Positions 18,535-22,194 of a stretch of 64,000 nucleotides of DNA are shown in pieces. The stretch's first letter is position 1, and every line of letters starts with the position of its first letter. The notes under the pieces were generated by a model. That model ran no database searches. It was not told the DNA's origin and saw only the letters and a list, made by a program, of their open reading frames with translations. The DNA is taken from contig JANHCV010000006.1 of NCBI GenBank assembly GCA_025594325.1, forward strand, positions 496,001 through 560,000, written 5' to 3'. The position numbers and the translations under genes were made by a program. This DNA comes from Blastocladiella emersonii ATCC 22665. Its lineage: Eukaryota; Fungi; Blastocladiomycota.

Positions 18535-19411
18535 TCGCTGCGAGTTTCTCTGGTGGGGAGCGCGAGGCGCCCACGCGACGCACACAAGTCCAGAAGCAGA
18601 ACCCCTGCCAGAAGTGAACGCGGCGGCCTGCCATGACGCAAACTAAGCGAAGGAGGTCGACCCACAACCCGCGCTCCAGCCCCGCAAGAAAACTCGTCGC
18701 GGCCCCACCACCCTGTCTTGTTCACCATCCTCTCAAGGCCAATTTGGCTAAGATCATGTGTAGTATCTGTTCTTTTTAGCGTGATAGCTAAAACCCTCGG
18801 CACAGCCGGGGGATTTCTTATCACTTTGATTTTTGTGGCCTCGACCTGATGACGCAATGTCTGACGGTCAAAATGTCCCTCGCACCACAGTACCGCGTTG
18901 TGACGTTTGGCTTTCGAGCCTTGTTTTGCTACTTTGGCCCTACTTCGCGCTGATCTAAAAGCGAAGCCCAAGACTTGTGTCAGGCAGAGACCCGCGTGCT
19001 GTGAGTTGAAGAGATCTTAAACCAGACCCGAAGCACCGGGTGTTCGAAAAGGGCGGACACGACCAACATACGATACAGTCGTTCTCACTGGGAACTGAAC
19101 ACGAGGTCGTTTGCGAGCTCTGAAACACACTCTTTCGCGGCTTCTTTTCGCGTTCCATTCCACGTTCTCGCTGCGCCAGCTTGCCGCCGCAGGCGTCCCG
19201 CCAGCGTCTCGTGCACCCCGCTCGCCCCGCAACGCATCAAGTGAGGTCACGCGATGGCGCTGCGCCACTCACCTACGCCGCCCGCCGTCGCCGCGGCCGC
19301 CGTCGCGGCCAGCGAGAGGGGAAGCACTGAGGAGGAATTGTTGATGCAACGACGTCTTGATGAACAATACACATGAGCTTGCTACGAAACACCTTTGTAA
19401 ATCGTGACTAG

Positions 19412-19869
19412 GCGGTCCTCGCTGCCGCCGCGGCTGCCGACCGACCTGGCCGTTGGCCGCAACCGCGGCAGCCGCAAGTCGTCCAAGGGCTCGGCGCAGC
19501 CGCAGCCGACGCCGGCGCAGGTCGCGAGCGGGCGCGTCCTCGCCGCCGTCAACCACATGTCGTACGCGTCGCAGCCGCGTCCCATGATGACTACGGGTCG
19601 CCACGACTTCTCCGACGCCGCCCTGCCTCGTCTTGGCGAGCGCGGCCGTGATCGTCCCCATCATCAGCGGCCCGTGCACCATGGCGGCTACTCGCAGGAC
19701 CGCGGCGGCTCGTCGGCGTCGTCCTCGTCGTCGCGCTACCACGACCGCCCGCTGTCGCCGCCCTTCCTCGGCCCGCCTCCCCGCTACCAGCGCTCCTCCC
19801 AGCGCGGCAACGAGTACGGGTACGGGTACGACGACGACGAGAGGACCGCGACCGCTACGACTACGACAT
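19412..19869 (+). other. Host-like coding fragment captured inside the Tc1/IS630 element
   Basis: GC-rich ORF with host-type codon usage encoding a Ser/Arg/Pro/Tyr-rich peptide (RSSLPPRLPTDLAVGRNRGSRKSSKG...RYHDRPLSPPFLGPPPRYQ), preceded by a possible intron 3' end (gtgactag, AG at 19410-11). Confidence 0.6.
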
Positions 19870-20327
19870 GTAGTCCTTCATCATCATGTGCTCGGCGTTG
19901 AAGTTGGCGCCGCGCATCTTGAGGGCCTTGAACGAGAAGTTGGCGCGTTTGAGGGCGCGCCACACGGTCTGCTGCGACACGTCCTTGCGGCGCTCAAAGT
20001 TGAGGAGGGCGACGAGCTCGCGCAGCGTGGTCGTGGATCGGATGTGCAGAAAGTCGATAATATACTAGAGCATCCGCTGCGCGAGGCGCGGATCATGGGT
20101 ATGCGGTCTCAGGATCGGCGTATGCACACATCGTCGGGACCAAGCTTGGACTGTCGCGCGTGGCGGCGCGGCCCGAAGGTGTCCTCGCCCAGCACGTCAA
20201 CGAGTCGGCTCCACTCAGAAACGCTGCCCTGCGAGACCTCGAGGCGGTCCGAGACACGGCGGACCGGAAGTCCTTTCACTCTGTGCATGCGAACAGCGGC
20301 GCGCTTGAGGTCTTTGCTGCATGTCAT
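19870..20327 (-). pseudogene. N-terminal half of an IS630/Tc1 transposase (HTH + winged HTH), DDE domain missing
   Basis: MTCSKDLKRAAVRMH..LPVRRVSDRLEVSQGSVSEW, then after a probable ~53-65-bp intron YIIDFL..TTTLRELVALL..VSQQTVWRALKRANFSFK. It ends before the first catalytic Asp. Confidence 0.8.
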
Positions 20328-22194
20328 GGTCGCGGAGAGTTCCACTGGCGCTTACATTCATCAGGGTGATCTCACCGATCTCAGTGCTTCCCCTCTCGCT
20401 GGCCGCGACGGCGGCCGCGGCGACGGCGGGCGGCGTAGGTGAGTGGCGCAGCGCCATCGCGTGACCTCACTTGATGCGTTGCGGGGCGAGCGGGGTGCAC
20501 GAGACGCTGGCGGGACGCCTGCGGCGGCAAGCTGGCGCAGCGAGAACGTGGAATGGAACGCGAAAAGAAGCCGCGAAAGAGTGTGTTTCAGAGCTCGCAA
20601 ACGACCTCGTGTTCAGTTCCCAGTGAAAACGACTGTATGCGTGGTTCGCAGGGCCGGCTCGCTAAACGAGCCTATAGTCTTATGAGGACGCGAGCTCACC
20701 GGCACATGTCCGCTCGGACCGCACGCGTTCACGCTTCTCATCCTCTCTCGCGACCGTCAGCCAGCGCTGAAAAATCGATCAAAAAAGGTGCAAAAAATCT
20801 GCATTCAGGGAGCCGTGCTTTTTAAGGGTTACAATGGCGAAGCGATGGGCCGTGAAACAGCGTTGGCCTCGTGCGTCAACTCTCTGATGTATTGTAGAAG
20901 GGAATCGAGAGATTGTAGCGTTTTTGACCCGATGCAAGCGAGGGTTTCATATCCTGGCAGCAACGCTAGAGCCGGCGGTATGAGTACCACTAGATCATGA
21001 ACTACGTCAACGCTTGTCTCCGCTTCGTTGTTTTGGGCACGCGCGCCGCAGCGAAGGTCGCGCTTAGTCTGAGCGTCAACAACTCCCGCGACCACAATGG
21101 TTGTATGCAAGCGGACGGGTGAGCCTAGGTAGCAACAGCCACTGGCCCAGCAGCAGGCAACAAAGGTTGAGGACCGTCTCGGGCAGCGACGTTCTGCAAC
21201 GCCCATGACCGTGGCCGTGGTCGCGGTCGCGGTCGCGGTCGCGCACAGGAAGGACAATGATCGCGACTGTGACCTGTGTTCGAGGTTGCTATCCTTGGAT
21301 CAGTCATGGTTGCTTACTGGTCACCCCTCTTTTCGGCTTGTCTGCGTATCCAATCCGCCCCGTCTCGAGACCCCCAAGGAGAACAACGCCCTTCTGCACC
21401 CTTTTGATTGAGAGATTCGTTGCTCTTTCCCTCATAAGCGACAGTCCCGACTCGGGAGACAGGGCGCTTCGGACGTGAAAGGTGTTGTAAAATCGCGTGA
21501 CCTGATCACGCGTCGCGCGCGAGACGCGGCTCAAACTGAGGATCGGCTCGTTTTTTTGTACCATAAACGTGATTGGGGTCAAGATCTGCGCGACGAAGGC
21601 TACCGCGGCGTCGCGAGCTGCGCGTGCGGCGTCGACCTTTTTCGCCAAAACCTCGTCATCATTCCCGTGCACCGGTATCGCATGATGATCGTGTTTCCTG
21701 AAGCTCATTGAATAAATTTCACTGAATGTTAAAAGAACGGAAGTGTTGCGTAAAACGTGCCTATCGTGGTAGAGCCGTTTTGAACGGTGGATCTTGTCAC
21801 TCAACAGATTAAGAGTCTCAGTGTTCGAAGCCGGCTGCGGCCCATTGGGCGAACGACTTGCTCCGTCCTTCGCAGACAAACACGCTTCACAGAGGACAAC
21901 TCGCGGTCGGACCTACGGGCCACCGGTGTTGGGAGGGAGTGTTGCGTAAAACGTGCCTATTGTGGTTATGGCGGCTCAAGCCCCGCCACCGCCCGCCACC
22001 GCATCGCGCTTTTGCAGATCGCACTTCGCGTCCGTGTGCCACACCACCACGTGATAAATGAACGCGTCTCCGCTGTCTCGCGCGGTCACATGAGCTCGCC
22101 TGATGCGAAGCGATCAATGAATGCGGTCGGCGGCGACGAAAAATCAGGGGACGGTCACCGCGGCCGCCCGTTTCTAGCCCCGTAAACCACGGCC

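Follow-up and report, generated by a model that had tools for sequence, protein, structure and literature searches.

The locus described here raises the question of whether a fungal Tc1/IS630 transposon has exchanged its catalytic domain for captured host DNA. The window, a 64,000-nt stretch of the Blastocladiella emersonii ATCC 22665 genome (C18:496001-560000 of a 32.65-Mb assembly in 21 contigs; 69% G+C), contains a 1,560-bp element at 19076-20635. It lies between TA dinucleotides within 19074-20637, has CAGT...ACTG termini, and comprises two long terminal inverted repeats (TIRs), a transposase remnant on the minus strand, and a coding-like block on the plus strand. A sequence-only reading had taken the block for host coding sequence that replaced the DDE catalytic domain, which would make the element a Pack-type transposon. 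It is on balance probable, however, that the element is a dead remnant which arose by internal deletion from an IS630/Tc1 transposon of the DDE_3 type and carries an orphan passenger, and that its history is the one proposed below. The element is now immobile. Its family comprises two copies with different deletions plus two solo ends, and the assembly contains no transposase source.

The TA flanks, the CAGT/ACTG TIRs, and the bipartite helix-turn-helix (HTH) region of the remnant place the element in the Tc1/mariner/IS630 superfamily as a non-autonomous member. The transposase remnant consists of exon 1 at 20130-20327, which contains the start codon and the first HTH domain, a spliceosomal GT..AG intron of 65 nt at 20065-20129, and exon 2 at 19864-20064, which contains the second HTH domain, terminates in ...NAEHMMMKDYMS, and with its stop codon (19861-19863) occupies 19861-20064. 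A 5' leader at 20328-20379 on the same strand, also found in the sister copy on C5, extends from the start codon to the right TIR. In Pfam, exon 1 matches HTH_23 above the cut-off (E 3.4e-6), and exon 2 matches HTH_33 and HTH_Tnp_Tc3_2 below it. A word search with exon 1 returns one protein of 133 aa, KAI9178818.1, annotated as 'hypothetical protein H9P43_005480 [Blastocladiella emersonii ATCC 22665]'. Its sequence, from which the spliced product was taken, is identical to the joined translations of exon 1 and exon 2, and the intron is thereby confirmed; the NCBI protein model joins ...GPDD to YIID.... The 133-aa reading frame is intact and annotated in NCBI, and the gene H9P43_005480 belongs to the transposon, as what remains of its transposase, and not to the host.

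Over 46 residues, the remnant shares 54% identity with the HTH_33 region of another transposase of the same genome, which is of the DDE_3 type. The match to this DDE_3-bearing relative covers the relative's residues 29-74 and nothing beyond. Homology fades at ...NAEHMMMKDY (residue ~80), ~10-15 residues short of the DDE_3 domain and its first catalytic aspartate, and the DDE catalytic domain (Pfam DDE_3) is absent from the window copy. The sequence-only reading was thus correct that the transposase is cut off just before the DDE domain, and its description of a non-autonomous Tc1/IS630-type element that lacks the catalytic domain and has a coding-like block antisense to the transposase is supported. 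It had also suggested that the HTH-only product could compete for TIR binding. This idea is not supported, because all five substitutions in exon 1 between the window and C5 copies change an amino acid (93% protein identity vs ~97.5% DNA identity) and no autonomous element is left in the genome as a target for regulation. A single-sequence AlphaFold2 model of the 133-aa product has a pLDDT of 41 and is unusable.

The origin of the interior is best approached through the sister copy, which is 1,308 bp long and lies at C5:589106-590417. The two copies have 19076-19581 and ~20055-20635 in common, with 41 differences over ~1,086 aligned sites (26 transitions and 15 transversions; 3.8%). The C5 copy also has a 221-bp middle, absent from the window copy, in which blastx finds matches to DDE_3 residues 128-168 (E 2e-3) and 232-253 (E 1e-6) of the relative. 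The corresponding fragments, ...FWEIIYDHLV within 128-168 and LPAYLPNLNPIENTFGIFKRSL at 232-253 (including LNPIEN), stand in parental order, and the family evidently once had a DDE catalytic domain. In the C5 copy, the DDE fragment that ends in ...FKRSL (...LNPIENTFGIFKRSL) directly adjoins position 19581, which lies inside the presumed cargo. The first 250 bp of the interior (19332-19581) are present in both copies with the same junctions and beside the same TIR. Since the C5 copy has this segment adjoining DDE fragments, 19332-19581 probably sat beside a DDE-bearing transposase in the parent. The proposed swap of the catalytic domain for cargo is not supported by this arrangement, as the C5 copy holds 19332-19581 by the same TIR and next to a DDE fragment. 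One of the C5 deletions falls on a microhomology, TAYAWYATCG, where exon 2 begins.

The shared 250 bp comprise an AT-richer spacer at 19332-19403 (5 differences over 68 nt between the copies) and the first part of the block, part C, at 19404-19581 on the plus strand (5 differences over 178 nt; GC content at third codon positions, GC3, 0.95). All five changes in part C alter the protein. The second part, part D, occupies 19582-19860 on the plus strand in the same frame and phase, with a GC3 of 0.84, and is single-copy in the genome; the C5 copy, the only other one that carries any of the block, has its first 178 nt. An inverted match of 22/28 between 19552-19579 and 19847-19874, with a common 10-mer ACATGTCGTA, has its two halves at the breakpoints of the C5 copy (19581) and of the window copy (~19868). 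A fold-back origin from this match was rejected, because such a match occurs in ~17% of Markov-simulated interiors (p~0.17) and is not significant.

The coding character of the block (19404-19868) rests on its plus frame from 19404, in which GC by codon position is 0.67/0.63/0.88 and 19404-19580 and 19581-19868 are in one phase. The periodicity of the whole block is reached by 0/20,000 shuffles, and that of part C alone and part D alone by 7 and 38, respectively. The plus frame has 0 stops vs 3.0 expected (P 0.037), and the minus frame that shares the high GC3 has 5. The block thus looks like one contiguous fragment of coding sequence, and the single reading phase makes it simplest to take parts C and D as one contiguous piece of which part D would have been lost in the C5 copy. 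The frame lacks a start codon, is antisense to the transposase remnant, and would encode a Ser/Arg/Pro/Gly-rich product that is of low complexity and disordered-looking. A transposase C-terminus hidden on the minus strand of part C was considered and rejected, because the frame after ...FKRSL stops after 10 codons and the high-GC3 minus frame has the five stops given above. Host open reading frames (ORFs) in the window have a GC3 of 0.86-0.97. The label 'host-like coding sequence' therefore holds insofar as the codon usage of the block is within the host range; the bias is not specific to host genes, as transposase exon 2 has a GC3 of 0.91. The putative intron end of the sequence-only reading corresponds to an AG dinucleotide at 19410-19411, which follows the AT-richer 70 nt, and the spacer could be either the element's own 3' untranslated tail or the passenger's intron end. 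This genome is rich in long but meaningless open frames, for example a plus-strand frame of 283 codons at 19591-20439 that shows no periodicity.

A captured fragment should have a donor. In the DNA search of the organism's own genome, only the element itself and 182 nt (19400-19581) common to the C5 copy were found. In the six-frame protein search of the 32.65-Mb genome, the remaining matches are low-complexity noise at E >=0.05; the candidate C5:261001-261285 (E 0.05) was rejected as a donor, being low-complexity sequence with stops. The block frame has no matches in Pfam, the ESM Atlas, or the word search, and a full HMMER pass over 1.84 billion protein representatives found nothing at E <= 0.001. 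The blank at the protein level is weak evidence because the block is of low complexity. More weight attaches to the DNA-level blank, obtained in a near-complete assembly, because the block looks free of decay. The description of the interior as captured host DNA thus lacks both a donor locus, as judged from the DNA and six-frame protein searches of the genome, and a homologue among the 1.84e9 representatives. Two observations had been named in the sequence-only reading as speaking together against capture, namely the lack of a donor locus and the block being the normal interior of the autonomous element. The first is what was found; for the second, the genome offers no full-length copy for comparison.

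The family census combined a whole-element DNA search with a search for the terminal 30-mer at <=3 mismatches, both over the whole genome. Six TIR ends are present in total, namely both ends of the window copy on C18, both ends of the C5 copy, and one solo end each on C17 and C16. The solo ends, at C17:1542583-1542811 (truncated at 229 nt) and C16:742137-742319 (183 nt), have TA outside and unrelated DNA inside. No autonomous copy of the family was found in the genome by the whole-element, terminal 30-mer, or HTH and DDE fragment searches, and two scans of metagenome contigs, one by protein and one by TIR pattern, gave no relatives of the element. Within the genome, the nearest relative of the C5 copy's DDE fragment is a distant IS630/Tc1 family on C17, C20, and C5. 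The search for the autonomous partner that the sequence-only reading had called for therefore came back empty, as the HTH and DDE fragments match only this family, which is 35-67% identical and has different termini.

Identity between the distant family and the remnant is 35% for the first HTH domain and 48-52% for the second; a 328-codon frame in one copy of the family contains both HTH_33 and DDE_3 (E 2.3e-20). The family forms part of a repeated unit, 5.46 kb or longer (L036:4471-9929 on C17 and L037:3488-8951 on C20), which is 98.9% identical between the two chromosomes. Arrays of an 11-bp motif (GACTAAACCTC-like) mark the start of the unit, and its copies, including L038 and L039, are variously deleted. 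As an autonomous partner, this family was rejected because the unit of at least 5.46 kb is bounded by the 11-bp motif arrays, not by a 256-nt TIR, and it is unlikely that it would mobilise the window element. The distant family resembles the window element's family in its intron-bearing HTH and DDE_3 transposase and in having sequence beyond the transposase gene. In contrast, its termini are the motif arrays, and it has no DNA or protein similarity to the block at 19404-19860.

The left TIR (19076-19331, plus strand) begins with CAGT, and the right TIR (20380-20635, minus strand), delimited by the repeat alignment, finishes with ACTG. The repeat finder gave arms of 259 nt (19073-19331 and 20380-20638) that include a palindromic ATA/TAT flank, and trimming leaves 256 nt each. 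The arms match at 255/256 positions, which confirms the earlier claim of 256-bp TIRs with one mismatch; at the sole mismatch, 19084, the left arm has C, and the opposite arm and all other family ends have T. An 11-nt direct repeat, CGTTCTC[A/G]CTG, is present at 19080-19090 and 19163-19173, 83 nt apart and mirrored in the right arm, and the pair is a possible set of IR/DR-like transposase binding sites. The TA dinucleotides at 19074-19075 and 20636-20637 agree with the target-site duplication claimed for the element, and TA adjoins 6/6 family ends across the genome, so that the left TA is presumed to be one copy of it. The duplication itself is unproven, as a search of the genome with the flanks found no empty site. 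The flanks are single-copy except for 18689-18943 on the left, which recurs with 86% identity at C1:4822307-4822560, and the element lies in a repeat-rich stretch.

The near-identity of the arms had been read as a sign of recent movement or recent homogenisation. Six arm sites (columns 30, 32, 34, 117, 205, and 208 of a 258-column alignment of the arms) differ between the window and C5 copies identically in both arms, whereas single-arm changes number only two. Independent decay cannot yield such a pattern, and the arms have evidently been homogenised, with at least three conversion tracts apparent in the alignment. Of the two explanations offered earlier, homogenisation from arm to arm is favoured and recent movement is not, because of the six paired vs two single changes. 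At the arm sites, the haplotype of the C17 solo end is intermediate. TIRs are not regenerated on insertion. As the arms are homogenised, their near-identity gives no insertion date, and identical TIRs are unusable for dating DNA transposon insertions in the way that LTRs are used. The copy-to-copy divergence of 3.8% would be the better clock, and it argues against very recent activity.

Taken together, these results can be accommodated in one history. The parent would have been a transposon with a convergent coding-like passenger between the 3' end of an intron-bearing transposase gene and the left TIR. The passenger itself could have been one of the element's accessory genes or something acquired earlier. 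The window copy may have arisen through one internal deletion from just past the second HTH domain to the inner end of the passenger, probably by interrupted gap repair after excision. The outcome would be the spliced 133-aa HTH-only frame that ends at a fortuitous stop. At least three further deletions, including one at microhomology, would have shaped the C5 copy, and the 256-nt arms would have been kept alike by arm-to-arm gene conversion and not by recent transposition. The observations behind this history are the anatomy, the family census, the lack of a donor, the segment common to both copies, and the paired changes in the arms; from them we infer in what order the events took place, how the deletion came about, and that part D belonged to the parent.

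Several points weigh against this history. The interior of the parent is itself a reconstruction, the genome having no full-length copy, and typical Tc1/IS630 elements carry a transposase only. The C5 copy could be a mosaic that template switching assembled from a window-type element and an autonomous copy, in which case the cargo would have come after the loss of the DDE domain; the junction counts of the deletion and template-switching histories are about equal. Moreover, the low complexity of the block makes the failure to find a homologue weak evidence. A broader statement, that the block at 19404-19860 is either a transduplicated piece of a host gene with a donor that later disappeared or what remains of a native convergent accessory gene, in an element whose arms co-evolve by intra-element conversion, is rather doubtful as a whole.

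One alternative is Pack-type transduplication, in which gap repair switched to an ectopic host gene and brought ~460 bp, part of it intron, in place of the DDE region; the donor would then be lost or unassembled and the C5 copy a later chimera. The GC3 of 0.88 in the block, within the host range of 0.86-0.97, fits with this, as do the single open plus frame without a start codon, the AT-richer stretch ending in AG just upstream, and the loss of the DDE region exactly at the place of the block, and Pack-Mariner elements are documented in rice (PMC8903248). Yet a recent donor should be recognisable, given that the block is fresh, with no stops and its periodicity intact, and neither the DNA nor the protein searches found one in the 21-contig, 32.65-Mb assembly or a homologue among 1.84e9 representatives. 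The first 178 nt of the block and the spacer junction are also present in the DDE-retaining C5 copy, and 133 transposase codons are still in the window element, so transduplication in this form appears unlikely.

Two further explanations are very unlikely. The block might not be derived from coding sequence at all, but be GC-rich filler of degenerate triplet repeats (GCC/GCG, TCG, and TACGGG runs) whose open frame is a by-product of 73% G+C. Short triplet runs do occur in the block, meaningless long frames such as the 283-codon one at 19591-20439 are common in the genome, no protein homologue is found, and the P for zero stops is only 0.037. However, one phase is kept over 465 nt across two segments of different history, none of the 20,000 shuffles equals the whole block, and most of the block is not a recognisable repeat. 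We give equally little credence to horizontal transfer of a family that arrived with a fragment already captured in a previous host. The tiny family of six ends and the lack of both an autonomous copy and a donor would be in line with such an arrival, whereas the codon bias of the block and the transposase exons fits an extremely GC-rich host, the two copies have diverged by 3.8% in place, and metagenome contigs and protein collections contain nothing similar.

The internal-deletion history matters little beyond annotation, and the clean signature of concerted evolution between the 256-nt arms is its modestly interesting part. It also gives a caution, since a 69% G+C genome makes open frames and host-like codon bias cheap, so that a claim of gene capture needs a donor. 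Should a donor or a full-length parent be present in other Blastocladiella strains, this would be one of the rare documented instances in which a fungal Tc1/IS630 element carries passenger DNA. Were the block a true transduplicated host fragment with a vanished donor, the element would count as a Tc1/IS630 transposon of Pack type from an early-diverging fungus (Blastocladiomycota).

In comparison with known systems, the HTH-only product recalls the KP repressor of the P element, which is a truncated-transposase inhibitor. Both are N-terminal DNA-binding parts of a transposase from an internally deleted copy. Unlike KP, the window frame shows no sign of selection and has no autonomous element to inhibit. 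Pack-TYPE elements are non-autonomous class II elements with fragments captured from coding genes and are recognised by their matches to these genes (PMC8903248); Pack-Mariner elements are known in rice (PMC8903248), and Pack-CACTA elements have also been described (PMC6379663). The window element resembles them as a non-autonomous TIR element with a TA flank and a coding-like fragment unrelated to the transposase, and this much of the Pack-type reading stands. In contrast to them, it has no match to a host gene in the genome and protein searches, keeps part of its transposase gene, belongs to a family of two copies only, and has its block partly in the DDE-retaining C5 copy.

The third comparison is with internally deleted Tc1/mariner/IS630 elements. 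Such elements arise by abortive gap repair or microhomology-mediated deletion. A miniaturised Tc1/mariner element in Aedes (PMC3814204) is an example of this non-autonomous type. The window element differs in its 256-nt TIRs, its complete spliced HTH-only frame, its lack of a surviving parent, and the ~460 bp of its interior that are not assignable to the transposase gene. It agrees with them in its TA target, CAGT termini, and intact TIRs, in having lost the DDE region but retained the parental terminal regions, and in breakpoints that differ between sister copies, one of them at short microhomology.

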